Assembly (NCBI GenBank): GCA_964247055.1
Contig: OZ176053.1
Location: forward strand, 806,001-870,000
Origin: Paragordius varius
Taxonomy: Eukaryota; Animalia; Nematomorpha
Reading direction: 5' to 3'
Length of the DNA stretch: 64,000 nt
Each line of letters begins with the position of its first letter. The stretch's first letter is position 1. Below, one piece after another: positions 3,001 through 48,200 of the stretch. A model generated the notes under the pieces. That model did no database searches. It saw only the letters and a list, made by a program, of their open reading frames with translations, and had not been told where the DNA came from. The translations under genes and the position numbers were made by a program.

Positions 3001-6000
3001 TCTATGGTATTAACAATATCTATCAGATTCATCAAAAAGTATAAGAATTACCACCATAGAGCTCTTGTTTTTTTCCATTCTTTACATCAAATATTTATAC
3101 TACCTACCCATTTAACGAAAAAAATATAAATTTTTATCGGTAAAAAAAGGATACATGACTGTATATATATATATACCATTTACAGTTCAAATTCGCCCTT
3201 GAACAATTCAAATTCATCGTTAAATAATTCAAATTCACCTTAAAAATAAATTATGTGTGTTCGAACTAATATAACTAATTATTAGTATGAAATATAAGTT
3301 TATGGTATAGTTTATTATTTTTTAAGTTTCTATTTTAATTTAAAACACAATTTTTACTTTTTGTAAAAAAAAAACATATAAAATATAGGTAGGTATCTTA
3401 AAAACCTTTTATTTTTTGAGGTTGAATTTGAATTGTTCAAGGGCCAATTTGAATTGTAAAAGGGTGAATTTGAATTGTTCAAGGGTGAATTTGAATTGTT
3501 CAAGGGTGAAAATGAATTGTTTAAGGGTGAATTTGAATTGTTCAATGGTGAATTTGAATTGTTCAAGGGTGAAATTGAATTTTAAATGGTGAAATAAAAT
3601 TGTTCCAGGGTGAAATTAAATTGTTCAAGGGTGAAATTGAATTGTTCGAGGGTGAATTTGAATTGTTCCAGGGTGAAATAAAATTGTTCCAGGGTGAAAT
3701 TAAATTGTTCAAGGGTGAATTTGAATTGTTTAAGGGTGAAATTGAATTCTAAATGGTATATAAATTTTTCTGTAGATTAGCCGTATGTTAGCAACTAAAG
3801 CAGCTATAGCTACGCGTTTCGATGCCCTCGGGGATGGAACAAGCACCACGACTGGCCCCATGGATTTAGGTCTTGAACATAAGGCAAAACTCGAAATCCG
3901 CTTGAGATATTTGGAACAAAATCAGGTTAAATTAAACATTTACAGTAAAAATTGAAATTATATATATACGGACAAGTTAGTAGAAATATATAAAGACAAA
4001 TAATTTTTTTTTTCGTCAAAGGTAAACCATACTTTTTGTATACCTTAATTCATTCTTATTTAAATTATACAATTTGAATTATAAAGTATTAAATGTTTGA
4101 TTGAGTTACCAATATACTTCTCTAATTTTTACTTTGCAATTTTTAAGCATTATTTAAATTTAAAAAAAAAACAAGATTTAAAAAGTATAGAGTTGTCTTA
4201 AAATTACATTTTGTCCGTATAATATTAATTTTTACTGATATTTAATTAATTAATTACATTGTGTTTATTGATTGCGGTTTTTTCTAGAATAAAAAAATGA
4301 GTGGAACGAAAAAACCGACCTTTGCACCCCGATATGAAGACACAGAAGAGTAATTATTTGGATATAAATTTTTATTTTTTATCATAATATATTTTATAGA
4401 CCAAAAAATATTTTAATATTGTAGTGAAAAAATATTATAATAAATGAAGTTTTTTAACTTATTATATTATAAAATATTGATAAATCAATTGTTAAATAAA
4501 ACTATTTTTTATATTTTTATTTTAATTCTTACAATTCCAATATTGTCTTATAATATTATTGTTAATAATTAGTCAAAATAAGGTCCCTTATGATACAAGA
4601 TTGGATTCTACACTACCTACTGGGGCGGTCAAACGAAAAGCTCTAAATTTAACGCTAGAAAACGAAAATGGTATGCATAATTTAAATTTAATAGTTTCAA
4701 ATATATTATGTAAAATTTTAACGGTTATGTAATTTAAAACCAATTAAAATAATAAAAAGTTTTTATTGTGATTTTTTATGAATTATAATTTCTTAAATAT
4801 TATTTATCATTTTGTTGTGATTTTATTAAAACAAGAATAAATTTTATTTTATATTGGGAATATTATCGCCTCTATTACACTTATATATATAAAATTTTAA
4901 TTTTTTTGAGTCATAAATGATTTTTTATATCTATTTGTTGTTCCCAAAGAGCTTAGTTTTTTTAAGATTGTCATACGAGATTGTTATTATTACTAAGCTT
5001 TACAGTAAAATAAAATTATACAGGAAAAACGTGAAAACTAAAAGAGGCATCATTTTTAACCATATTTTTACACTTTAATATTTCCTCCATATACTATATA
5101 CTAATTATAGTAAAAATTGAAATTATACGGACAAAACGTAAAATATAAAGACAAATATTTTTTTTAAAAAAGACAACAACCATACTTTTTAAAAGCATAA
5201 TGTTTTCCATATAAGCTACTTAGTTACAATTGTAAAATATAGAATTGATTTTGGTAGTATATTTATTTCACACTTTGCCATTTATAATAATGAGTTATAT
5301 TGATATAAATCTAGATTTGAAAAGAATAGTTAGTTGTCTTTTAGAAAAGAATATTTGTCTTTATATTTTTACGTTTTGTCCGTATAATTTCAGTTTTTAC
5401 TGTTTTTAAATATATAATTGTGTGCTTTACCAAAAATTTCTATTCTCTATATGGCAAAAAAATCAAGGTTAAGAAAAGAGTTGTCTTTTTAAAAGATGTA
5501 TTCAATAAAAATTATTATACTATGGACAAAACTGAAATTATAAAGACAAATAAATATTTTTTTCAAAAGAGAATCATACTTTTGTAATCCTAATTTTTAG
5601 CATATAACTCATTGTTTAAAATGCAAAATACGAAATTGATATGTATATTGGTAATACAATCAATTATATATTTTACAACTATATTTAAATAATTTATATG
5701 GGACAAATTAAAGTGAAAAAAAGTATGGTTGTCATTTCGTTCGTATAATTTTAAGTTTTACTGTACGTTTTGGTTTGTATAATTTTAATTTTTAATGATT
5801 ATCTTTATTATATGTACCTTAGCTGATGATTTATAATTAAATAGTTTTTTTTATAAAAGGTCAAGATACCTGTTATTATAAATCTCGTGTATTGATAATT
5901 TTTTTTAAATCATAAATAATTATTTTTTTTCGCATCATTGGTGGAATATATAATGAATATAAAGAGTTAAGGTTAATATTTATAATGGTTTTACTAAAAA

Positions 6001-7124
6001 TAAAATTTTCTTTTTATATTACAGGACAAATTATAATTATACAAACAAAACGTAACAATATTTCTTTTTAAAAAGTCAAACATACTTTTCTTGAATAACA
6101 TTTGTTAAAATCCGTAAGATAACGATAAAGCAAAATTAAATGAAAGTATAAATAGAAATTATAAACGATATGTGAACCCTTCGTCAATAGTAATCGCAGA
6201 CTAGTTTCGTGCTTGTTAGCACTCATCAGTACGACACAACTATTTGACTAATTGGGGTTTTCACATATCGATTACGTATATATATCCAACTTTGCAATTT
6301 TGGTATAAATGCAGTTGGTTATACGAATTTAAATTAAATTTAATGGAATTGTATATATATATACGAAATCGATATGTGAAAACCCAAAGTAGACAAATAG
6401 TTGTGTCGTACTGATGAGTGCTAACAAGCACGAAACTAGTCTGCGATTACTATTGACGAAGGGTTTCACATATCGTTTATAATTTCTATTTATACTTTCA
6501 TTTAATTTTCCTTTATCGTTATCTTACGGATTTTAACAACTGTTATTACAAAACAAACATAACCAATCCGTTATTTGCCATAACAATACTTTTCTTGATT
6601 TTTTCATTGATTTAATTTCCAGAGTAATATAAAATAGAGTAGCATATGGGTAACTCAATCATTTGTTATCTTACACTTCAAAAATAATTTACAGAGGATA
6701 ATTAAAGTGTAAAAAGCATATTTGTTTTTTTGAAAAAATATTTGTCTTTATATTTTTACTTTTTGTTCTTTCGTATTTCTTTTTTTATTGTAATGTTTTA
6801 ATTGTGATATTAACAACCATAAATTTCTAATATTAATATTTAAAATTATATTTAATGATATAATTTTTGTTTGTAGAAACAAACATTGTCAAAAAATTAA
6901 AAATGTCCGATGAATCAGTAGTCAATGTTATGGAAACATCTTCTGTCTCAATTTCTACGAATAGTACGGAGATAACTGAAGGAAAAATTAAAAGTTATCA
7001 TTACACGTTTTTTGAAAATATATACCATTTACAATTCAATTTCACCCTTAAACAATTTAAATTCACGCTTGAACAACCCTTGAACAATTCAAATTCACCC
7101 TCAAATAAAATATATGTTTTTTAA
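1..7124 (+). CDS. NOP58: Nucleolar protein 58 (box C/D snoRNP), 5'-partial, 7 exons in window
   Basis: Phase-consistent GT-AG exons <1-53 ([17 protein letters not shown]), 606-732 ([26 protein letters not shown]), 1231-1394 ([38 protein letters not shown]), 3776-3925 ([19 protein letters not shown]), 4288-4349, 4573-4670 ([17 protein letters not shown]), 6877-? Nop domain plus the NOP58-type DSTLPT..KRK motif. End of the last exon is uncertain (open to 7124, running into a repeat). Confidence 0.93.
1445..1800. mobile_element. Foldback-type non-autonomous TIR element with 21-bp subterminal arrays (family B)
   Basis: Begins TATACCATTTACA, tandem TTGAACAATTCAAATTCACCC units, mirrored at the right end; whole element is an imperfect palindrome. 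Confidence 0.8.
2225..2520. mobile_element. TA-flanked MITE, Tc1/mariner-like (family A, representative copy)
   Basis: TA|CAGTAAAAATTG...~100-bp TIR...CAATTTTTACTG|TA. About 30 complete or partial copies, approximately 868-1145, 3943-4238, 5108-5402, 5500-5764, 6020-6793, 8662-8946, 17960-18240, 23472-23768, 24979-25174, 28991-29190, 31075-31378, 31570-31865, 32412-32647, 32955-33255, 34075-34350, 35635-35878, 41510-41758, 41783-42067, 44276-44575, 45370-45600, 49062-49490, 50977-51250, 51510-51755, 52120-52372, 52845-53120, 57863-58159, 58236-58537, 60442-60711. Confidence 0.88.
3172..3760. mobile_element. Family B foldback element with expanded right-arm 21-bp array
   Basis: TATACCATTTA...TAAATGGTATA termini; about 3 units on the left arm and about 15 units of GGGTGAATTTGAATTGTTCAA on the right (~3420-3750). 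Confidence 0.85.
6193..6235 (-). ncRNA. Minimal type I hammerhead ribozyme motif (antisense copy)
   Basis: Exact reverse complement of 6405-6447. Confidence 0.85.
6405..6447 (+). ncRNA. Minimal type I hammerhead ribozyme motif
   Basis: GUCGUA-CUGAUGA(6411-6417)-stem II GUGCU/AACA/AGCAC-GAAA-C-UA-G-U-C(6441, predicted cleavage 3' of C)-UGCGAU. All core nucleotides present; stem III is the palindrome ACUAGU; stem I GUCGUA/UGCGAU is extended by AAUAGU/ACUAUU and by a 15-bp helix 6370-6385/6461-6475. Confidence 0.88.
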
Positions 7125-7330
7125 GATTAAAAATACCTATATTTTATATATTTTTAAAAAATAAAAATTCTATTTTAAATTAAAATAATACTGAAAAAAT
7201 AATAAACTATACCATAAACATATATTTTATATTAATAATGAATTATATTAGTTCGAAAACACATAATTTATTTTTAGGGTTAATTTGAATTGTTCAAGGG
7301 TGAATTTGAATTGTTTAAGGGTGAATTTGA
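7021..7330. mobile_element. Family B foldback element (right end truncated)
   Basis: TATACCATTTACAATTCAA start, 21-bp units on both arms. Confidence 0.75.
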
Positions 7331-9591
7331 ATAATCTGTTTTTTATTTACATGACCTATTTTCACGGTCTTGGAAATGATTTTTTTTTGTAAATTATGTT
7401 TTTTTGAAGGCTATTATATTACTATATTTAAATGAGGTTTGATTGTCCAACCTAAAATGGCTTCGGTGGACCGCATTTCTAAAATACAGGGGGGCCGTAA
7501 AAACATATTTTATTAGATTTAAAACATTAGAAGACTGTGAGTAAAGGTAAACAATATAACTGCTAATGTTTCTTTAATATAATTGCTAATCCGTTTATTA
7601 ACTGGAGACTTAATTAAAAATTTGTTTAAGAAATATCAATTTCAATAGATTTTATGTGGTCCCTGTGGGCCGCGTGGACATCATTTAATAAATAATTGCA
7701 TGTTATTTGCCCTGTTTTGTTAATGTTTAAATTATTTTGTTTACCCCAATTTTATAAATTCTTATTTGGGTAAGCTTGTTTTGCCATTTTTACCTGGTAA
7801 TTTTATACATTGAAGTGCTATCAAAATTCAAAAATATTTCTTTTATAAATATTGCAAATTATTATCATTTACACAAAACTTATTATTTATTAATCATTAA
7901 ATTTTTATAATTAATTTTAAAAAACAAGTGGTAACTATATATATCGTAATTTTTTTTGGTTAAGTTTACTTTTTTGTATGGGCAATAGATATGGCATCTT
8001 TATAAAACTATTTTTTCTCATATATTTTTTCGATTCACACTTAATATTTTACATTGTGTTGACTTTAAGAACATTGTCTTTTTTAAACATGACATTTCGC
8101 ATAAATAGAAATTATTTTAAAAGTTTTAAAACCTGTATTTAACGGGAATGAATTTTAACAAAAACATAAATACATGCTTATTTTAAAATTGTATATGCTA
8201 ATTTTTATAAAAAATTATTGTTACATTGCAAGTTGATTTAAAAATTTTTAAGCCTTAGTTATAAACTAAATATAATAGATGTTTTTTATTTAATAATGTT
8301 CAAGTTTTTTATCAATTATGTTAGCTTTTGAATTTCTAGTATTGAAGTCATAGGATAAAAAATTATTTTTTAAAGAGTTTCCCAGTTTTTAAGCAATTTT
8401 TTATCATCGATGACATTAACCATTAATTACAACTTTAAGTTATTTATTTTTAACTCTTAATCACTTAACCCTTAATTCGGAAAACATACATTTTTACAGA
8501 TAATGATACCAGCGAGCTAAATAAAAGTTATGTCAAAATTTTAATATTTAGCCAAAATTAAAAAATGTAACCGCACATTTAGAAATAATTTATTTGCTAA
8601 ATATTAAAAATAATTTAATATATAAAAAATTTTTTATGAGTTCTAAATATCCAAATTATTACAGTAACAACTGAAATTATATACGGACAAAACGTAACAA
8701 CAAGACAAATCTTTTTTTTCTAAAAAACCATACTTTTTTAAACCTTAATTGTTGTCATATAAATTATATAATTACAATTTTAAAATATATAATTTATTGT
8801 GTCACCAATATAGATATAAATTATTATGCAATTTGAAACAATGAGTTATATATAAAAATTGAAGTAAGACAAGTATGGTTGTCTTTTTAAAAAAAAAGTT
8901 GTCTTTATATTTTAACGTTTTGTCCGTATAATTTCTGTTTTTACTGTAATAAACTCTTTCTTAAAATTGCAAGATAGCCGCATTCTAGCGACAAATTATA
9001 CGAAACAAATATTTAAATTTTTTATTAACAACATCGTTAGAGGGTTTAAGTTTTTATTAAGCTGGACGTTATATAATATATTATAAAACATGACTTTAAC
9101 AATTTGAGACTAAAGATATCTAGTACCTCAAAATTTTAATTGAAAAAGTAATTTTATTAAACAACTTATATAATAGTAAGCCATTTCATTAACGGGCTTT
9201 TAAATTTTTATTTTTGTTGGGCATGAGAAGTCATTGGTTAATTTTTGTTTTTTGTTGAGTTATATTAAAATATTGTGTGTCGACAATATTATCTCAAATT
9301 GACAATGTTAAAAAAATAGGCCTTTAATATGTAAAATAAGCGATAAAGAAAATTTATTTTTTAATCATTCTTTCGAGATTAATCTGAGTTATTAACCGTC
9401 TTCCAAAAAATATATAATAAAACATACATGTTTAATCCAAAGTTTTTGTAGGAAATACATTTTTTTAAGCCATATTTTTAGGATTTATTGATGTTTCGAT
9501 TGAAATATTTGCACCATTTTTGCATTTTTAAGATCTTGTTAGGACAAATTCTTAAATATAATCTTTAACGTTTTATATATTTTTTTACCCT

Positions 9592-10284: not shown

Positions 10285-10597
10285 TATACCATTTATATAA
10301 TTCACCCTCGAACAATTCAAATTCACCATTGAACAATTCAAAATCACTCTAAAAATAAATTATGCGTTTTCGAACTAATATAACTCATTATTAATATAAA
10401 ATATATCTATATGTCATAGTTTATTATTTATTCAGTATTATTATAATTTAAAACAAATTTTTATTTTTTAAAAATATGTTTAATTTTAAAAACATATAAT
10501 TTTTTTGGGGGTGAGTTTGAATTGTTCGAGGGAGAATTTGAACTGTTCAGGGGTGAATTTGAACTGTTTAAGGGTGAATTTAAATTGTAATTGCCAT
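10285..10597. mobile_element. Family B foldback element
   Basis: TATACCATTTA start and 21-bp units on both arms. Further copies at ~24089-24340, ~31943-32223 and ~37745-37994. Confidence 0.75.
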
Positions 10598-13500
10598 ATG
10601 TATAACGGTACAAAATGAGCTTTTGTACTAAGGCTTTGTCCCAATCATGTTTTAAATAGCTAAAAGTGCGCAAATATATCAATCGGGATGACATCAAATA
10701 AATCAAAATATAGTTAAAAGGTATTTATGTACATGTCTTCTTAACAACTTAAAATTATCCATATTTTTGAACATACAAAATTTTTGGAGGAGTTTGGTAA
10801 ACTCAGATTTGTGTCGAACAAATTACGCAATTTTATTCACCTATCAATATGTAAAAAATATTTGACTTTCTTTCTACATTTTACATAATTCAAAATTGAA
10901 AGTAGGTTTATGATGAAATTTTACAGGTAAGCATAAGTAGTATAATTGCGTATTTGTTTAGAAACACAAGTGGGTTACGGCAGTTTTAACCCTTTATAAA
11001 AGAAAATTATTGAAACAAAAAAAGTTGGATAAAAATAAACAATTTTTTACTTGAATATCCTCCATATTAAAATTTTTTTCGCTCATTACTGTAAAACTCG
11101 TGTTTTAGGGCTTTTCGCTAATAAAATATATCATTGGTTATATGTATGTGTTTTTTATTTGTATGTCGGGTTATTTTTTTTGCCAGCCAGACGGTAATAA
11201 CTAGTTGATTTATACTACCAATGGAATGTTATGTTGCAATAATAAAGTGGCACTTAAATAATTAGTGTTATACCATTTTATAAATTATTTAAAAGACTTT
11301 TTATTTTCAAAAGTAGTCACTATCCCGGTTAGGAATGTATTTGTAACTAGTCCGACCCGACCTTAATTTTATATAGGAATATAATTTATACCTATTTTAA
11401 TAACATGGTCCTTTACTGTAATTTTATAAACAAATAAAATTTAGAAAAAAAGAAAAAAGTAAAGACGTCCGAAGAATAGCAAAACATTACATCCATGATT
11501 CAAAATTTTGATTCCCATCAAAATATTTTGTACAAATAATCAATTAGCAAATATTCCCCTCATTTTAATTATATGTCTTAAACTGTATACATGACATGCA
11601 CAACATTAATCAACATTGTATAGACTTTAATCAATAAATTTAGTTTGTTTCGAGTTTTGATATTGAATGGTTTTTACATAATTAGGTTGATGGAGATTTC
11701 TTAATTATGTTAAATTTGAAATAGCATTTTTTTACAAAATATACCCAGGATAGTAGATGATGGTTGTATACAATGTATTACCGTACCAAAAACATACGCA
11801 CACATATTAACAACTTCCGGTCATTAAATTGTGTGTGTTTTTTTCGATTTTTGGAGCAAGGGGGGTTGGTTAGGATATGGCATCAAAATAAAGCAGTATT
11901 AAAAGATAGATGTTCTTTTTTATTTTAGAATATTTTCTTTCGATTTATTTAACATATTTATTTAATCAAAATTGAAATTTAGATACAATATATTGTTTAT
12001 AAGAGTTAAATATAAACTTTATTATAAGGAAAACGATTACAGTTCAAAAACTAAAACAAAGGATGACAAAAATGTTCCAAAATTTACCTGTACATATATA
12101 TGTGTACATTTTTCGTTATCATATTAATACATGGTACACATACTAAAAATAAATTGTTAAGATTAAAAACATTTTTTGAATATTTTGAGGGGAGTAAATT
12201 TTTTATCTTTTTTTTCGTAATCTTTTTTTCCCTGTTATATATGTATCCAGGCAAATTAAATTTAAAATTGTAATATAATTATTTATAAAATTATCTAATT
12301 GTTTTTAAATAATAAATTAAAATATAATTTAAAATAATTAAATAAAAAAATATTTTATAAACATGCGAGTTTTTCTCAAGTATTTGGCGCGTTTTTGCAA
12401 CATTGTATGTATATATATGTTGATTCTCTAAGTGTGTGTTTCTGTTTTTTTTTTTTCATATTTATACTTACATAATTATTTTCTGTTTTTTATTTTCCGT
12501 TTTTATAAAATAAATAAATATATAAATATATTTTAATCTCTTCGTTTTTTTTGTATACAATTTATAAATCAGGTGGGTTTTTATTCTTAAATATATATAT
12601 AATTTATATAATTTCATATGTTAGCAATAATGTGGAAAAAAGGTTGAAACCTAACCTATTATACACTCTCCCTCTATTCATGCTGCATATTTAATCATAA
12701 ATTCGATTTTTTTCGCTAAAAATTCATATATTATATTAATACTCAATCATTTTTATTTTATTGTAAAAAAATATCTGACAATTCATAATTTATAAACACC
12801 ACAAAAATATCGTACAGTTTAGCTGAAATTATTACTTTTTCCAGATTGTCTTATCAATCAAAAGTAATCGCGAATTATAAACGTCAAATAATTCGATTTA
12901 TACCAGCGAACTAACGTTTTTTTACATTTTCTTGGTTCAAAATAATAATATCGAATTTTAGAAGAAAATTAATTGAATTTTTCCATTTTCTTCGGTATAC
13001 TTTACAGTAATATTTTCATTCAAATTACATATAATCAACAATAGCAAATAATATATGAAAGTTCAACACTAAATAATAATTAATAATATATGCGTTTATG
13101 GCCAAAAGTTCAGATGATTAACCTGCAATTCGAATATTAGAAATGGGATTTTATCAAATGTCAAAAAAAGTTTTAAGGCCTTATGGAATGCTCAATTAAA
13201 AACCAGCTAAAATAGCTCAATAAAACGATATCAAGGTTTATGTTTATTTAAATTAGAAATAATTTCGAATACAAGTTTTTATGGGTTTTGAATTTTTATG
13301 ATGTTTTTAATCCGGCGTGTGTGTGTGAGTCGAAAAAACGGAAGCTTGTATTAAAAAATTTACATTGTCTGTGTTTTCATTCATACACGCAGAAAAAACA
13401 AAAATTATAACATTTATTTAGGCTTAAAACTTTTTTTTTCGAATTAAATATCATTTTTATAATCGCATTAATACTAAAATTGAAATAAAAGTTACATATA

Positions 13501-13670: not shown

Positions 13671-16600
13671 ATGAATCCTATTTCCGGTGTTCCTGGGGTT
13701 CGTCAACCGTCATGTCTTTATAACAACAATAATAATCCGATAGTTACCATGGCAACATTTTATCCTGGCCAAACGACGCTAACCACAACATTGTGTAACA
13801 ACAATGTTGCAGCATCAATGTGTGAAACTACACCCATAGCTAACGCTCAAAACATGTACGTTAATTATAAAGAGGGAGATTTCCTTCAATCCTTTAATGC
13901 AAACCCGGGGATGGTAAAACGCAAACCTGAAATACTAAAGAACTTACATAATCTAGTTACCATGGCAACTGACCCACCCGCACAAACTTTTAATGTTAAT
14001 ATGGATAATGCCATAAACAGTTTAAATTACCAACAAATTTTTGCGAACCCTAATGCTAACAATAATCAAATCAATGTCAACATTGATGAACTCATTGGTC
14101 AGCTGATTGACCGGAAACGATCTGGGTTGCCATCGCAACCATCTGCTCTCCCAGATTCAACGTATCACATGACTTCAGTATTACACAATTTGTTGGAATC
14201 GGAAAACCGGTACCGACCCTTACCTCATTATTTTGCTGCGGTTCAAACGGAAATTGAACCTTACATGAGAAAAACTTTAGTTACATGGATGTTTGAAGTT
14301 AATTTTTTTTTATAAACAATGTTTAACTTTTTTTTTATTATAACTACTTTACATGAGAAATGTTTTAAATAATGTTTAACAAGTAAGTAAGGAAGAAGCC
14401 CTATAATTTATCTCTCATCAAAATTACATTGTAGTTAAAGTATTTCGAATGAACTCAAAATATCCCAAATACCATTATTTCAAACAAAAAAACTATTTGC
14501 TTTAACTAAACCACCATTGCACCAATTATGCCAAGACTTTTTTGACACATCTAAGCTGTTTTTTAGTCTTTTTGTGTAAATTGCATTCTCAACAAAATAT
14601 TTTTACATATTAGTATTTGTATAATTGGGCTCATTTTCTTTTTTGAGGTGAAAGGCAAAAATGTATGTTTGTAAATACAAAACAATAAGATTACAAGTAT
14701 AATTTATATATGATTTTAACCCAGTTGGTGGTAAATTGGTTAAATATATAATCGTATGTGTGTTAAATAAATTCGTAGCTTAAGAAAAAATTTTTCTGTA
14801 ACTTTCTAGCTAGATTTTGTTTGAGATTCAAGGATATCTTTTCAAATTTTTAACATTGTACAAAGTATCTCTTTATACATATATATGTATCGCAAGAATT
14901 ATGTTTGTCTTTATGCGTTAATATGACTCAAACTTTTTGATAAGAACACAAAGAGCCCGAAAAAATATTTTTAAAACAGCAAAAATTTTATGACACAAAT
15001 CGAAATTCCTTCATACATATGTATAAAAAATGAATCGGTTGAAATGCCTATTTTGTCATATATACCAACCATCTGGTTTTTAATACTTAACTCATAATTC
15101 AAATGTGTTTATAGGTTTTTTTTAAATAGAAAATATAAAATTTATTGTTTTAGTTATTTATATAAAAAATTCCTGCCTACAATTTTGGATAATTAAAAAC
15201 TGTAATGTCGTTCGTTTTTCATGTGACAGTTGACACCGGTCTTGTTAATGTTGCTAAAAAACTTTTCAAAAATTCTAAATAATTATTTAAGTTTTTTGTT
15301 AAAAATTTTTTAGGACTTTTTTATATAGTTTATATATTTTCACTTAAATTCATTCACAAAATTTTGAATGTTCGCACGTGGTTTTACTGTTTTTTATGAA
15401 TGAATGTTATATACTTACAAAAATATTTGAAGCATTTTTGTTTTTCTGCGCACACGCAAATACAAACAACAATTAACATTTTTTACACTTATTTTTATTG
15501 CTAGAGATTATTTTTACAAAATTACTAAAATATATATCAAAGTATTAACACTTGTATACAACACACTCATTTTAGTCCTTCGATTCAAATTGGGGTAGTT
15601 GGATACCCCATGCCTATTTAAAATCAAATATTTTAAAAAGTAGGAGGAAATTGAAACCATGGCAAAATTTTGCACTTAGATAACATCAATAAACCGAAAT
15701 ATATAAAAAATTCTATTCAAAAATATTTGATATTACTTATTTTAAGCTAAAACCGAAAGGTAAAAATTTCGTCAACGTGACATGTGTGAAATAATAAACT
15801 TATAAAATAACACAAAATAAACCGCTTTTTCTATATCTATCAATGTTAGATGTAATTTAAATAAAAAATTTGCTTTAATTTTACCTTTAAAATTACATTA
15901 AGACGATATTTTGCAAAAAAATTTAAAATAAAAATGGCGTCGAAGTAGTTTGACATGGAACTTTTTTTTTCAACACAAAATTTTATTAAGATATTTTGGC
16001 ATATTTATATAATTTTCATTAAGATAGAAGCATAAATTTAAATTGGGACCGTTTCCTTCAGTAGTTTTTTAAAAAATTTAATTTAAATTTAGTCTGGGGT
16101 ATTTAAAATACCCCAATTTGAATCGAAGTGTTAAAAATAAAGTTAAAAGGTTTAAATGTCCAAAATTTTGCGTTCATATAAATATTACGAATTTATCAGC
16201 TAATTACTCAGATACAGTTTTACTAGAAATAATATTATATATGAATAAGACTAAACTTATTCCCGGAAAACTTGGCATTAAATCTATTTTTACGTGAAAT
16301 TTTATCAAAAATTTTCAATTAGTAAAATTTGCCAAATTAATAAATGCTATATAATAATACATCCTATATATCTAAAAGTTTTTCGGTAAACGCACAAATT
16401 TTTCGCAGAAAAAAAAAGTTTGTTAATACCAACTTTTAAACTTGTTGTTGAATTTTTTCCATGATAAAAGTTAAAAATTATAAAATAACATTTTTTTATA
16501 GGTTTGTGAAGAACTTAAACGCAGAAAAGACGTCTTTCAACTGGCCGTTAATTTTTTGGACCGGTTTCTTTCCACGATAAATACGCCAAAATGCAATTTG

Positions 16601-19600
16601 CAACTCCTGGGAACAGCCTGTATGTTACTTGCCTCTAAATTTAAGGAAGCCCTACCTATTAGTTCTGATGTCCTTGTAGTTTATACGGACCATTCGATAA
16701 CACTTACCGACCTATTGGTCAGTCCCATATATGTTTTTATTTTATTTTCCTCTTAGACTATAAAATTTATTTGTAGATAATAAAAAATCAATTTGGATAT
16801 GTAAACTATCGTTATTTCCGTGGTATCATGATAATAACATCTAAGTAAATAATTTAAAAGTTAATTAAAAACTACACTGCTTGTTAGCATTCATCTGTCC
16901 GACCCAACTATTTGACTTGGGATTTTTTACTTATTAATTTTAGTATACATATATCCAACTTTGTAATTTTGCTAAAACAAATGGTAAAAATTAATTATTG
17001 AATCATGTTAAACGTAGTTAATTGAAAATATGTACCCTCTTGAACAGGGGTGGGTGTTCAACACAAATGGCTTTGCGGGCCGCATTTTTCGAATCAAATA
17101 TAATCAAACGAGCTGGCCCCATTCCCCAAATATATGGGCATTAACAATTTTATTAGATTTTAAACATATTAAAATTTTATCATTTTTTTCTACTTTATTG
17201 CCAAAATTCGGAAAATTTATTCAGAAAATTTGTTAATTTTACTTAAACATCATATTATTTTGTATGAAATTTCTCGCAGGCTACATAAGTATTTAGAGGC
17301 CGCGTGTTATGACACCCCTGTTCTTAAACAGCACTTTTTTATTATGTTATAAGCCAAGGTAAAATTGTTTTCATGTTAAAATTTTAACATAGCTAAAATT
17401 CTAGTTTTGATTAATGCATTTCACAAAAATTTTATCTAGCAAACACTTTATGTATATCAAAGAATTTAGTTGACAAAATATTATTAAATGTGCCTTACTC
17501 CATCCTATGCATAAATATTCAGCTGTCTCAAAAGTTTCCAATAAAAACTTAATTTTACAATTTTGTATTTGCTGTTTTTTCTCAAATTACTTTTTCGTAA
17601 TGCTGCTATATTATAGTGAAATAATATATATACTGTGCGGAACCAGGTCATTAACATACATTAAATATATTTTTATAGGTAGGTATGCAATAAAAAAAAT
17701 AACTTTTGACTTTTTTTGCAATGAAATAATATAAAATTTGTTTCGAAAAATTCCCTTTGAAAAAAACGCAAACGAAAATGTTTCAGAATATTTGTGCGTC
17801 TAGGTATGAGAGAGTACAGGTGTAAAAACTTTCAGGGAGATATGTAAATATGCGCTCTTTTTAATAACTTAAAAATATATTCACCTAAGAATGTGTGTTT
17901 TGCCTTTTGCCATAAGTATTAATACCGAATTTAGAAATTATATTGTTGTGCTTTAAACATTAAAAATACATTAAATTAATACTATACGGACAAAAACAAA
18001 TATTTTTTTTTCAAAATTAAACATTTTTAAATCTTATTTTTCCTATTTAAACTTTTTATTTACAATTGTAAAATTTAATTTTGTTACCAATGTAAGCTAT
18101 TTCTGATATAGCAGTTTGAAACAATGACTTACATAAAAAACCAGCATTTTCCATTTTTATAAATATATAGGTCTAAATTAGCGGTCTTTTGAATTATCTT
18201 TATGTTTTTTACGTTTTGTCGGTATAATACCAAAGCATATGATAATAAAACATAATGTAAAAAAAAGTTCTTGAAAAAATTTAAAAAAGTAAAATAAAAA
18301 ATATTATTTTTTAAATTGCCTATAGAAATGGGAAATTTTGCTGGCAAACATATTGGATTGGGATATAGCTGCACCCACGCCCATGACTCTATTGGAACTT
18401 TTCATTCAACAACATTGTTTATTCACAAACATTGTTGCAAAAACCCAACTTAATAATAATAATTCTATTGCTTTTGATAGCTTAAACATTTTGCTGGAAC
18501 AATTTACACAACAATTATCTACCCTGGCTCAATACCTGATTGATAAATGTCTCCTAGGTTTTATTTTTTTTTAATAAATACAATTTTTATCATTTAAATG
18601 TTTTTTTGTGAAAAAATTACAATATATATATATCTAACAACAACAATGTGCGACAGTTTTATTCTAGTTTATGTTTTTAATTCTGTTATTATGTCATCAT
18701 ACCATACTTTTTTTATAAAAAAAACTTTGTATTTATGGTGTGTAATATTATACATATTGAATGAGGATACCAGGAAAATTTTAACGTTACAATCAATCAT
18801 AAACCATATTAGAAATAATTAAAAAAATATGTGTAATATTAATTTTGATAAGTTGTAAACAACTTAAAGTGTCTTTGGCTATGTTCTATTACTAAATTTA
18901 TAAACTTGTTTGTTTCACCACAAATCAAATGCAACAAATATCGTGATTACTGTAATTTAATCTTTTTCATTCTAAAATGGTATATGAAAAGCTCTTTGAT
19001 CTTATCATTGCTTATCTGCACCTATAATCATTTTATTACATAATAATACATTTTGCGTTAGTTAAATACTAACCGGACCGATTGTTATATCAATTTTAAA
19101 CTATAAAACTTAAAATTCAAATATTAGTCGAAACCGGCTTTCTACAAATCCATATTAAGAAAACATAACATTGTTACATTGTTGTATTAACGAATCGCTT
19201 CGGATTTGTTTAATACATAAAAGGCACACATAAAGTGTTAATTTCCTAAGTCGTCCATACTTGAGAAGGGTTAAGTATCGGATATTAAAAATATTTTATA
19301 ATAGCATCAATAAATGTCAACATGATAATTTTGAATAGAATACCACTCTACGCATTTTATTTCAGTTATTTTAATTTTTTAAAAAAAATAAGCTTAATAT
19401 ACATTGCTTTAAAATTTTTACGAATTATTCCATCATCAATTACAATCGATATGGAATTAAAAAGAAAACTATTTGACTCTAAAAGCAATGTGTCCAACTT
19501 TTTTTTTAAAACACTGGCACCCTTTGGAACCGGAATTATTGGATTTAGAAACGTTTTTATGACAAAAATTAAACAGGTATAGGTATCAAATTTTTTTTAA

Positions 19601-45200: not shown

Positions 45201-48200
45201 ATACTGGTCACTGATAAAATTTTGTCATTATTTTTTCAGTTTGGTTTTAGCCTACACAGTGTCTCACACTCTTTTTACCCTAAAAAGATCTGTGGGATAG
45301 AGTCCAAAGAAAAAAAATTAACTAGGCAATGGGTTAATTGGGTTTTGTCACATTTTAGCAAAAAAACTACAGTTAATATTGAAGTTATACGGACAAATCG
45401 TAGAAATATAAGTTAAATATTTTGTTTAAAAGACAACCATACTTTTTCCCATCATCGTAATTTTTCCTTTATAAGCTGGTTAATTTGAATTGTAAAATAT
45501 AAAATTTATTGTGTTACTAATACACTGGTTCACACTTTGTCATTTAAAACAAAGAGTTATTTTTTAATTTATAAAAGTATGGTTGTCTTTTAGAAAAAAT
45601 TTTTATTTTAAGTTATTAATCTCATGTGTCAAACAACAAATATTCCCTGGTCAATGTAAAAATATTTATGCACAAAAAAAGTTTATTTAAATTATATAGC
45701 CATGTCTTTCGAATGATTTGGTTTCTTAGTTATTTAAATGGTTGAAATATCATATGTCTAAAATTATATTGAAAAAGTTTTGTTCAAATATTTATAATTA
45801 AAAACTAAGAAAGACTTTTACAAGTTGTATTTTGAGAGCCGGCTTATTCTTTTCAACCCTCAAAATTGGATTGGTAGTTCATCCATACTAAATTAATTGT
45901 TCCTTTTCAAAAAATGTGCCAGGAAAACATGTAATGATGCTCAAATTTTTTGCAAAACAATTAACTGCTTAACTAACTCTAAATAGGTCAATTTTTAATT
46001 TTTTTGTTTGGCGTAAAATAATAAACAACGCAAAATTTTAAATAAAATCAATCCCGATATGTCATTGCTTGGAATTTCTGTCCGCACACCAAAGTATCCT
46101 GCTTTGGCCACATACTGACTTCTAACTCACTGGAAAAATCCTTTATGTTGGGAAAGAGTGGTAGTGCACGTAAAAGGGGCCGAAGAAGGATAAGGTATAT
46201 GGACAATATTCTACAAGAAACTCATGCAACTATTGGCAGTCGCAACCTGTGAAGAAGAATAAGTTTTACTTAAAATATTCTAAAAAGTCGACCTCGACTC
46301 TATTACAGCAAATATCTGATATTAATCTGTTAAAGCAAATCGAAAAACGGCTATTTCAACATTTCAAATATTGAGTTGTTGTTGAGCTTGTAGTCGGTTA
46401 TCGACCATTAGCGAAAAACTTCCTCCACTCGGTTCTGTCGGGGGTTTAGATAGTTGCAGTGACAATTTGGAAAGATTTTGTCTATCCAGCCAATACGTCT
46501 TCGTCCTCTTCCTCTCTTGCCATTTAATTTTCCTAACATAATATCATTTTCCAAAGAATGTCCCCGAATAATGTGTCTAAAGGAACCGAATTTTTATTTT
46601 ATAATTTTACCCCTAAGCGTTGTTTGTGCGTTAATTTTATTTACAATGTCGATGTTCTTTATTTTGTCCTTCCATGTTATACCAAGTATTTTTCTCCAGC
46701 AAAAGATTTCAAAAGCGTTTATTCTTTTTTCGTCTTCACGTTAAATAGTCCAGCTTCACATCCGTATAACATGATAGGAAATATTAATGCTTTTATTAGT
46801 CAGTTTTTTGTTTTTAGATTTATGTCATGAGATCTCCATATCTTGTAGTGTGAGGCTAGAGCGCATTTGGCGATAGCTATGCGTCTTCTTATTTCTTGGG
46901 AACTGGAGTTTGAGTTGTTAATAATGTTTCCAAGGTATGTGTATTCGTTGACTACTTGAATTGTTTCGTTATTAATCCGAAGTGAGTCATAGGAATGAGG
47001 GGAGTTGATATGCAATATTTTAGTTTTGTTATGGTTTAATGTAAGGTTGTATTTTTTGCACACATTTATAAAAGTTCGGAGACTGTTTTTAAGGTTCGTT
47101 TGTGAATTTGTTATGATTACCGTGTCGTCTGCGTAGTGGAGAATCGTCAGAGTTGGACCCCCTACTTTTATTCTTGGTAGATTTAGATCCCTCATGATAC
47201 ATTCCAAATATATGTTAAACAACAAGGGGGATAAAATGCAGCCTTGACGCTGACCTATGTTCATTGGGCTCCTAGAGGTCGGGCCATGCGGAGTGTTTAG
47301 TAATAGGTAGGAGTTGGAGTATATGGATTTAATTAGTTTGATTAAGTGATCGGAAACTCCTATTTGTTTAAGGGCCTTCCAGAGAATGTCATGTTGAACG
47401 GTATCAAAGGCTTTAGAAAAATCCACGAAACATAAATGTAGCTCATTTTGGAATTCACAGTTTTTTTCCATTATCCATCTAAGGTTTGAGATCATGTCTC
47501 GGCATCCTCTTTTTTCTCTAGAGCCTGCCTGTGTCATTGATATTTCCGGTTTGACATATGTTTGTAGACGGTTTTGTATTATTAAGAACACTTTAGAGGT
47601 TTGAGTGATTAATGCTATCATGCGGAAAAGTTCTATATTGAGTTACAAATGGCTCTCTGTGAAACATCCAAAAAAGACATAACTTTCATCATCGGCGATT
47701 TTAACGCTATTATAGCTAACGATAAAACAGACAAGGTCACTGGTGGAAAAGGCTTTGATAAAGTCAAAAACCCCCGTGGTGAAAGGCTAATTGATTTTTG
47801 CCAACAGCACAATCTCTTAATAGCGAACTCGTTTTTCAAACAGCCTAACAGACGGCTCTACACCTGGACCTCCTCGTGTCGTAAATACAGGAATCAAATA
47901 GATTACATATTGGAATGCAAAAATACAAAAGCTCATTTCAAAACATCCGGTGCTACTCGAGTGCAGACTGCAACTCAGATCATAACCTATTAATGGCCAA
48001 AATCAAAATAAAGCTACAACTTCCCCAGCCGCAAAAAAACTTTTCCAAAACTAAATTGAACTACAAACTTATACCTGCCGATTTTACTCCAATCCTTAAC
48101 AATAAATTTGAATCCTTAAATTACGAAACATTCAACACAGATGATCTTTGGTCCACTATTCACAAAATTACCACCGAAACAGCCAAAGAATATATACCGC

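Follow-up and report, generated by a model that had tools for sequence, protein, structure and literature searches.

Penelope-like elements (PLEs) leave insertions of a recognizable form, in which an inverted 5'-truncated copy is present and a tail of 30–40 bp is found at one end (Craig et al. 2021, PMC8557442). The tail is the interval between two start sites of the reverse transcriptase (RT) (Frangieh et al. 2024, PMC11167929). A PLE protein has been shown in vitro to nick both strands and to extend them, and priming from both strands is so far documented only in vitro, for one vertebrate PLE (PMC11167929). Animal retrozymes are 150–450 bp long and low in GC, have target site duplications (TSDs) of >4 bp, and coexist with PLEs (PMC7229834; bioRxiv 10.64898/2026.07.22.740005). 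Hammerhead ribozymes whose palindromic helix III is short work as dimers; where that helix has 2 bp, a second sense ribozyme in tandem is normally required (PMC4209133).

The insert studied here spans 491 bp (6095–6585) of a 64-kb window of Paragordius varius contig OZ176053.1, the window being the whole stretch of DNA that was analyzed and the source of all coordinates below. As a preliminary description of the locus had stated, it holds no RT or GIY-YIG ORF (the longest ORF within it is ≤56 aa), and the 444-nt unit of its repeat family holds none either; for this reason we do not file it as an autonomous PLE. With a probability of roughly 0.8, we take it to be a dead-end copy of a family of non-coding hammerhead retroelements that matches the animal non-LTR retrozymes, which are non-autonomous PLE derivatives. 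The unit is non-coding, its insertions carry PLE signatures, and it coexists with dissimilar coding PLEs, and it therefore fits that class. The parts of the insertion are these:

6082–6094, no strand: left TSD copy, ATACTTTTCTTGA, a direct repeat identical to the right copy at 13/13 positions
6095–6350, minus strand: left arm, unit positions 1–261 (6350 down to 6094/6095), by blastn against the 444-nt L008 unit
6189–6240, minus strand: left-arm hammerhead motif, with its 31-nt core motif at 6199–6229, identified by a Hammerhead_HH9 match and the exact motif
6351–6585, plus strand: right arm, a 5'-truncated partial unit, positions ~66–293, by blastn against the L008 unit
6400–6451, plus strand: right-arm hammerhead motif, with its 31-nt core motif at 6411–6441 and a predicted cut after C6441, at unit position 149/150
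6526–6571, plus strand: predicted stem-loop, ACGGAUU/AAUCCGU pairing with an A/C-rich loop, −6.9 kcal/mol
6548–6585, plus strand: one-sided tail of 38 nt, on the right arm only, the interval from one alternative 3' end of the family to the other
6586–6598, no strand: right TSD copy, ATACTTTTCTTGA

The inverted repeat (6094–6285 against 6355–6547, ~192 nt each) aligns in blocks of 111 nt (96% identical) and 86 nt (97%) with a 1-nt indel between them. A perfect 13-bp TSD, a 491-bp insert with ~192-nt inverted arms ~96% identical and a 38-nt tail on one side only had all been reported in the preliminary description, and all were recovered. That description also called the insertion intact, which it is not: it consists of two 5'-truncated partial units (1–261 and 66–293) and is missing unit positions 294–444. 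The right arm does start at a (TA)n run, as had been said, but the run (6351–6364) is internal to the family unit, at positions ~66–74, and is not target DNA. End clustering across the family identifies the outer end of the left arm as the "short" 3' end, while the right arm extends from the (TA)n run that belongs to the unit itself to the "long" 3' end. Thirteen derived differences from the family majority, among them a shared deletion of ~10 nt, are common to both arms, which therefore stem from one template lineage and one event. The sequence is that of an unremarkable family member, with ~1–2% private changes and no sign of special conservation. Among sequencing runs, those holding the locus behave as DNA contigs, and none of them is on record as RNA. 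They contain both insert junctions in two organism A samples, and a single contig of low depth, labelled organism B, contains the right junction; an empty-site joint was not listed for any of these runs. Within the loop of the predicted stem-loop lies the family's short 3' end; the fold is only weakly better than shuffles (z −2.4, with 4 of 200 shuffles equally good), and it showed no compensatory changes.

Genome-wide the family has at least 134 matches, and the exact hammerhead motif occurs 129 times, against 0 for the reversed pattern. The 444-nt unit is the period of natural partial tandems; our reference was a natural copy (L008:905–1348, minus strand), not a consensus, and majority letters served for counting only. 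Ends, TSDs and junctions were censused in 21 insertions. Sixteen of these are head-to-head pairs of 5'-truncated copies in which both outer ends are 3' ends, and both they and the insert have the PLE-type arrangement of an inverted 5'-truncated copy beside a direct copy, with variable truncation. The remaining five are simple 5'-truncated partial tandems that span the unit boundary and have no inverted arm. Perfect TSDs of 13–16 bp flank 10 of the 21 insertions, compared to 0 of 419 shifted-boundary controls; 11 have no clear TSD. Short outer ends cluster at unit positions 257–263 and long ends at 286–293, ~26–31 nt apart, with AT-rich short microhomologies blurring the exact position of several long ends, and each cluster sits in a copy of the heptamer ATTACAA. 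Two alternative 3' ends and an optional tail, 38 nt in this copy where PLE insertions have 30–40 bp, are thus both present. Unit position 1 is a recurrent 5' end, and 5' ends at unit positions ~1–15, ~51–77 and ~376–400 mark candidate hot spots. Inner junctions and arm lengths vary in every family copy, and neither poly(A) nor a simple-repeat 3' tail was present at any family end inspected.

Taken alone, this copy could pass for a foldback or MITE-type DNA transposon, since it has long inverted arms within a flanking direct duplication, as such elements do, and gives hairpin-type matches to several microRNA models; the hammerhead-like motif would then lie in the arms by chance. The anatomy of the family already contradicts that reading, and we consider it extremely improbable. 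Each copy has its own arm lengths and inner junctions, five are without any inverted arm, and the arms are stretches of the tandem 444-nt unit rather than conserved terminal inverted repeats. The preliminary description had likewise argued against a DNA transposon, for which it expected TA or 8-bp TSDs and symmetric ends; the TSDs are instead of no fixed length (13–16 bp), the ends are asymmetric (one short, one long) and the junctions variable.

Tandem copies bear on another possibility. At a few loci, such as L008 and L016, there are 2–3 same-sense hammerheads ~444 nt apart, in short arrays of about 3 units at most. These arrays, and the insertions that cross the unit boundary, would also be allowed by a circular or tandem DNA intermediate, so that the family could be a hammerhead-bearing tandem repeat, satellite-like in kind, that spreads by DNA recombination or by re-integration of circular DNA. 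Recombination of that kind predicts neither outer ends fixed at two sites nor the many head-to-head, 5'-truncated copies, and TSDs of 13–16 bp are typical of staggered nicks; we find this explanation very unlikely.

Autonomous PLEs coexist with the family, as evidenced by 59 matches, in several identity classes, to a 787-aa ORF with RT and, at its C-terminal end, GIY-YIG. In Pfam, RVT_1 and GIY-YIG both scored above cut-offs when the halves of this ORF were searched separately, and the full-length search returned none. One coding PLE has copies 95–99% identical to each other and the same head-to-head architecture, with a tail of ~35 nt. Neither the 444-nt unit nor its hammerhead was found by blastn in the loci fetched, which cover 4–5 families of coding PLEs and a part of all PLE copies; the unit gave only short, AT-rich, chance-level matches there, and the repeats of these coding PLEs carry hammerhead variants different from that of the unit. 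The genome search proposed in the preliminary description, for further copies and for a coding master, was successful on the first count, and on the second yielded no RT/GIY-YIG master carrying the unit among the fetched PLE loci. At a distance of 240 bp from one family copy (L049) lies a degraded PLE fragment that seems to have inserted separately. The window also holds a separate RVT_1 ORF at 46800–47621.

That ORF could be compatible with a different explanation, that the family is SINE-like and mobilized by a LINE, its inverted arm arising by twin priming as in L1 5' inversions. Variable TSDs (13–16 bp) and 5' truncation fit target-primed reverse transcription of the LINE type, and L1 inversions also join an inverted 5' segment to a direct 3' segment within one TSD pair. 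In L1 twin priming, however, the inverted piece can have any internal position as its outer end, and poly(A) stands at the opposite end, whereas here both outer ends are specific 3' sites of the element itself, that of the inverted arm being one of the same two, and the inspected ends have no poly(A) or simple-repeat tail. A coding PLE with the same architecture in the same genome likewise speaks against a LINE, and we rate this explanation as unlikely.

The hammerhead core had been described as full in each arm, and so it is: the 31-nt motif is identical in the two arms (0 expected in 100 shuffles), and CUGAUGA, GAAA and GUC follow in canonical order in both, in agreement with the type I catalytic core (CUGANGA, GAAA, UH triplet). 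Helix II (GUGC/GCAC) has 4 bp, with a G-C closing pair (G10.1-C11.1) and a 6-nt loop; helix I has 6 bp, including two G-U pairs, and beyond it lie an internal loop and another helix of 6 bp; and helix III is the palindromic mini helix ACUAGU, of 2 bp. Judged by its sequence, the motif belongs to the canonical metazoan type I, in the form whose palindromic helix III has 2 bp. The covariance-model search suggested in the preliminary description produced only a sub-threshold match, to Hammerhead_HH9 as the best of Rfam, at 26.7 bits where the gathering score is 52 (E 5.7e-4, searching 1.7 kb) and with the model's helix III deleted in the alignment; no Rfam model reached its gathering score anywhere in the 64-kb window. 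Matches to microRNA models at the insert (mir-5014 and others) are artefacts of the long hairpin, and a SNORD27-like match at 6615–6685 (E 2.7), which has no C box, was taken as chance. Across copies, conservation within the unit is highest in the hammerhead block, with 0.9% minority letters against 5.0% elsewhere (Fisher p ~1e-21, from cells that are not independent).

For the RNA of this particular copy, the prediction is different. Folding of the complete insert gives a hairpin of −297 kcal/mol (z −37), and an RNA spanning it is predicted to form a near-perfect hairpin of ~190 bp in which the ribozyme is paired to its antisense copy. Each strand has one sense hammerhead, and there is no second sense ribozyme in the insert with which to form a dimer. 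Because of these two features, the ribozyme of this copy is probably inactive. The preliminary description had a complete hammerhead lying sense within the NOP58 pre-mRNA; its core is indeed complete and in the same sense as NOP58, but the predicted hairpin and the missing tandem partner weigh against its activity, and its place in the pre-mRNA is putative. We mapped NOP58 as follows:

615–779, 1245–1409, 3785–3925, 4288–4351 and ~4572–4670, plus strand: recognizable NOP58 exons, from an exon-by-exon search with no joined model

Two of these exons match the Pfam Nop domain. PDB matches for 1245–1409 had NOP58 as best, with NOP56 close behind, and those for 3785–3925 were to NOP58 only. A donor-like GTATGC closes the last recognizable exon; if unspliced, its frame would meet a stop at 4730–4732. 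No NOP58 exon was recognized downstream of 6598, nor any K/E/D-rich frame on the plus strand up to 16000; a candidate exon at ~6877–6990 was rejected, as a repeat of very high copy number overlaps it and Pfam gave no match. Placement of the insertion inside a NOP58 intron is consequently putative. The same exon map bears on whether the insert might have been co-opted, either with its sense hammerhead cutting the NOP58 precursor or with its hairpin yielding small RNAs that regulate NOP58 or silence the family. A plus-strand hammerhead in the sense of NOP58 and a predicted near-perfect double-stranded RNA of ~190 bp would suit such a role, but recognizable exons end ~4670 with none recognized beyond the insert, ribozyme folding would face competition from the hairpin, a dimer would lack its second sense partner, and nothing in this unremarkable copy points to special conservation. 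We think co-option highly improbable.

Our preferred reading, a non-coding family of the retrozyme class, rests on comparison with several described systems, and the class of element is itself already described (PMC7229834; bioRxiv 10.64898/2026.07.22.740005). Like animal non-LTR retrozymes (Cervera & de la Pena 2020, PMC7229834; Li, Clavereau & Pollet 2026, bioRxiv 10.64898/2026.07.22.740005), the family has a non-coding, AT-rich unit, at 444 nt within the range of ~150–450 bp, a type-I hammerhead with 6-bp helix I, 4-bp helix II and mini palindromic helix III, tandem copies at a few loci, and TSDs of >4 bp, and it shares the genome with autonomous PLEs that have other, more minimal hammerhead variants. 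GC is 20–25% in the window around the insert, and there is no LTR, PBS or PPT (the latter two judged by eye). Published retrozymes typically form long tandem arrays, unlike this family, most copies of which are dispersed, 5'-truncated and head-to-head. Retrozymes are also defined experimentally by unit-length linear and circular RNA, which would be expected of source copies in this family, and its tails and inverted arms are absent from the retrozyme descriptions (PMC7229834; bioRxiv 10.64898/2026.07.22.740005).

Those tails and arms are shared with PLE insertions (PMC8557442, PMC11167929), as are 5' truncation, partial tandems, an adjoining inverted 5'-truncated copy, a one-sided tail (26–38 nt in the family) between two alternative 3' ends, a repeat that contains a hammerhead, and targets rich in AT. 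Unlike PLEs, the family has no RT/GIY-YIG ORF, its unit has no detectable similarity to the fetched coding PLE loci of the genome, and its hammerhead is canonical and not of the "min-HHR" type. Schistosome and newt hammerhead repeats, as far as they are cited in PMC4209133 and PMC7229834, are similar short, dispersed or tandem non-coding units, with a type-I hammerhead that has an unstable helix III and functions as a dimer in multimeric transcripts; compared by these published descriptions, they appear unrelated to the family in sequence as far as is testable. The preliminary proposal of a Penelope-type, non-coding, hammerhead-bearing retro-insertion mobilized in trans thus finds support in the ends, tails and TSDs of the whole family. 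Since the family is non-coding, mobilization must be in trans.

We infer the following course of events. In source copies, the hammerhead would process tandem multimeric transcripts to unit-length RNA able to circularize. The mobilizing enzyme would be a PLE RT/GIY-YIG endonuclease encoded elsewhere in the genome, and an AT-rich target would be nicked on both strands, 13 bp apart. Each nick would then prime cDNA at one of two internal RNA start sites, the left arm at the short site near unit position 262 and the right arm at the long site near 290–293, giving the 38-nt tail. The left cDNA would extend to unit position 1 and the right one stop in the (TA)n run at position 66, and the two would converge and join head-to-head at 6350/6351.

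To our knowledge, the link between retrozymes and PLEs has so far consisted of co-occurrence and phylogeny. It is possible, though we put it at somewhat short of an even chance, that this family is the first integration-site evidence of a canonical-hammerhead retrozyme mobilized by Penelope-type machinery. Such mobilization is supported because copies carry a tail signature described as PLE-specific, because in most insertions each outer end is an RT start site, which would be expected if both nicked strands prime cDNA synthesis, and because the two start sites lie in the repeated heptamer ATTACAA.

At the level of the locus, a decaying repeat copy, the significance is small. Family copies, by contrast, are preserved well enough for a genome-based reading of the integration mechanism. 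Their two discrete 3' ends, head-to-head arms and 13–16-bp TSDs support the view that animal retrozymes are carried by Penelope-type enzymes, and the same features support priming from both strands by those enzymes. The 444-nt unit, with its two candidate start sites, offers a compact natural substrate for in vitro tests.

Counting copies genome-wide, as the preliminary description had proposed, showed that the insert belongs to a repeat family with at least 134 matches (436 first-look candidates) in the 110.6-Mb, 44-contig genome. The exact hammerhead pattern occurs 129 times and its reversal not at all. Natural partial tandems of the family have a period of 444 nt, and one such unit (L008:905–1348, minus strand) served as the ruler for unit positions. 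The window itself has a G+C content of about 25%. The parts of the window copy are as follows.

6082–6094: left copy of the 13-bp direct repeat, the target-site duplication (TSD), ATACTTTTCTTGA
6095–6585: 491-bp insert, bracketed by the TSD copies
6094–6285 and 6355–6547: inverted arms, from repeat comparison
6350 down to 6094/6095, minus strand: left arm, unit positions 1–261, from match to the L008 unit
Right arm, plus strand: unit positions ∼66–293, from match to the L008 unit
6548–6585: 38-nt one-sided extension, right arm only
6586–6598: right copy of the 13-bp direct repeat, ATACTTTTCTTGA
6411–6441, plus strand: 31-nt hammerhead motif of the right arm, exact
6199–6229, minus strand: 31-nt motif of the left arm, identical to that of the right arm

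The TSD, the paired arms with their tail, and a hammerhead core with the palindrome ACUAGU in each arm were thus all found as first described. The arms align in a 111-nt block (96%) and an 86-nt block (97%) with a 1-nt indel between. The term "intact" was too strong: unit positions 294–444 are missing, so that the copy consists of two partial units joined head to head at 6350/6351. The (TA)n run opening the right arm is unit positions ∼66–74 rather than target sequence. Both arms depart from the family majority in the same 13 features, one of them a ∼10-nt deletion, and each arm has only 1–7 private differences, which indicates that the copy would stem from a single insertion event and one template lineage, followed by about 1–2% divergence. 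Sub-threshold matches to microRNA precursor models (mir-5014, mir-1277, mir-4536) at 6208–6432 and 6248–6390 were rejected as microRNA genes, the long inverted arms explaining them. A weak SNORD27-like match just past the insert (6615–6685, plus strand, 20.4 bits, E 2.7) has no visible C box and is probably due to chance.

Judged from 100 shuffles, no occurrence of the 31-nt motif is expected by chance. Its core letters are all canonical (CUGAUGA, GAAA, GUC). Helix I has 6 bp, followed by a small internal loop and a second 6-bp helix; helix II has 4 bp with a G-C closing pair and a 6-nt loop; helix III, of 2 bp with a 2-nt loop, makes up the palindrome. The cut site is predicted after C6441. 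The covariance-model search gave a sub-threshold match at best, to Hammerhead_HH9 in Rfam, with 26.7 bits (E 5.7e-4, 1.7 kb searched) against a gathering score of 52, and no Rfam model reached its gathering score anywhere in the 64-kb window; the shortfall is probably due in part to deletion of the model's helix III in the alignment. Across copies the hammerhead block (unit positions 105–160) is the best conserved stretch of the unit, with 0.9% minority letters vs 5.0% elsewhere (cells not independent), and this conservation suggests selection on active templates. A functional ribozyme in a pre-mRNA, as first envisaged, overstates the case for the window copy. Activity in this copy is unlikely: each strand carries only one sense hammerhead, so a tandem dimer cannot form, and the structure predicted for a transcript spanning the insert is a ∼190-bp hairpin (−297 kcal/mol, z −37) in which the ribozyme pairs with its own antisense copy.

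We compared 21 insertions (20 loci and the window copy). Sixteen are head-to-head pairs, in which both outer ends are 3′ ends of the unit. The other 5 of 21 are simple 5′-truncated copies that cross the unit boundary, implying that the template was either circular or exceeded one unit in length. Outer ends group closely around two places, unit positions 257–263 (short end) and 286–293 (long end), each lying in a copy of the heptamer ATTACAA; the exact base is blurred by a few AT-rich letters common to unit and target. Perfect TSDs of 13–16 bp flank 10 of the 21 insertions, whereas among 419 controls with one boundary shifted there were none of 13 bp or more and only two of 10 bp or more. Inner junctions differ in nearly all copies, with apparent clusters near unit positions 1–15, 51–77 and 376–400, which may mark transcription starts or sites where reverse transcriptase stops. 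Inner (5′) ends seemed to recur there, for example at window 6350/6351 and at family loci L002, L010, L011, L025, L027 and L029, among only about 37 ends. A single junction lies close to the ribozyme cut site (unit position 149/150), which argues that most templates would have been either uncut or re-ligated by the time of copying.

Because the family itself lacks an ORF, we looked for coding partners in the rest of the genome. Several Penelope-like element (PLE) families, one with a 787-aa open frame, came up in a search for GIY-YIG and a protein search that followed it.

G000:C1:4914348–4916705 (L041:2346–4709), minus strand: 787-aa frame, reverse transcriptase (RT) and C-terminal GIY-YIG
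C6:307157–309292; C5:5848026–5850125; C3:3780414–3782045: related copies

These copies are 95–99% identical. Pfam gave no match to the whole frame, and both RT and GIY-YIG domains when it was split. At L041 the element is arranged head to head, as in the hammerhead family, and its two ends differ in length by about 35 nt; its repeat holds a degenerate hammerhead-like stretch only. More distant PLEs at L047, L048, L050 and L051 (C10:2.82 Mb, C5:10.19 Mb, C7:8.19 Mb and C5:5.89 Mb), L052 and L055 have 31–41% protein identity to the 787-aa PLE, and their hammerheads are variants of their own in which helix II is longer. CUGAGGA with a long helix II occurs in one, CUGAUGA and then a GCC/GGC stem in another, and neither is like the retrozyme-type motif of the 444-nt family. 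An RT/GIY-YIG-encoding master had been anticipated; coding PLEs do exist, but no coding locus fetched resembles the 444-nt unit, and we therefore infer a PLE as the mobilising element by architecture, not by sequence. A 273-aa ORF within the window (46800–47621, minus strand) has a strong RVT_1 match (118.7 bits) and belongs to a retroelement other than the hammerhead family.

Placement of the insert within a NOP58 intron also went too far. From searches with single exons, we recognized the following, all on the plus strand.

615–779: NOP58 exon, Pfam Nop domain
1245–1409: NOP58 exon, Pfam Nop domain; best PDB match NOP58, NOP56 close behind
3785–3925: NOP58 exon, PDB matches to NOP58 chains only
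4288–4351: NOP58 exon, readable frame
∼4572–4670: last recognizable NOP58 exon, readable frame

The last exon ends in a donor-like GTATGC, with a stop at 4730–4732 if unspliced. No NOP58 exon was recognized 3′ of the insert, and no K/E/D-rich frame up to 16000; the sole candidate, at ∼6877–6990, coincides in part with a very high-copy repeat and matched no Pfam family. The insert, 1.4 kb past the last recognizable exon, is in either an intron or the 3′ flank. The next recognizable plus-strand gene is cyclin-like (13671–14315 and 16556–16756, cyclin-box-like MRKTLVTWMFEV), about 9 kb of repeat-rich sequence past the last recognizable NOP58 exon. Extremely high-copy repeats lie at 3700–3833, 5040–5440 and 6916–7450, and also at 1344–1813, 3354–3752 and 10461–10706. 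Contig depth there is 100–1000 times that of unique flanks and some translate into runs of the kind NSNSP or, read from the opposite strand, FKFTLEQ, which suggests a short tandem period within a very abundant dispersed element.

Sequencing runs holding the locus behave as DNA contigs. Contigs of two organism A samples cover both insert junctions without differences. A 151-nt contig of depth ∼2 from run X5, labelled organism B, matches the right junction (6554–6704) without difference; it could reflect an insertion common to a close relative, the same species otherwise labelled, or carry-over. No empty-site joint was among the joints listed in run contigs.

The window copy is a member of an already known kind of element. 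Animal non-LTR retrozymes are defined as non-coding, low-GC tandem units of ∼150–450 bp (PMC7229834). Metazoan type-I hammerheads have a 6-bp helix I, a 4-bp helix II and a helix III of 1–2 bp closed by a small palindromic loop, and are thought to work as dimers in tandem transcripts (PMC4209133). PLEs are strongly 5′-truncated and form partial tandems, with an inverted 5′-truncated copy adjoining the upstream repeat and a 30–40 bp tail, often at one end only (PMC8557442). A lizard PLE has two adjacent internal reverse-transcription starts, the tail being the interval between them, its purified protein nicked and extended both DNA strands, and its targets are AT-rich (PMC11167929). The family matches these PLE features in its truncation, head-to-head arms, tail and two 3′ ends, and the short start site lies in a weakly predicted stem-loop whose loop is A/C-rich (−6.9 kcal/mol, z −2.4); without covariation support, it is reminiscent of the AC-rich one in the lizard element. 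The original reading was right in kind: a retro-insertion of Penelope type that bears a hammerhead, is non-coding and would be mobilised in trans.

That retrozymes are non-autonomous PLE derivatives has been argued from co-occurrence and phylogeny (2026 preprint, 10.64898/2026.07.22.740005), and neither tails nor inverted arms were found described in the retrozyme texts consulted. The main interest lies at the level of the family rather than the single copy: its copies bear the tail of PLEs and start sites at both ends, a signature that would be direct mechanistic evidence that retrozymes are mobilised by PLEs.
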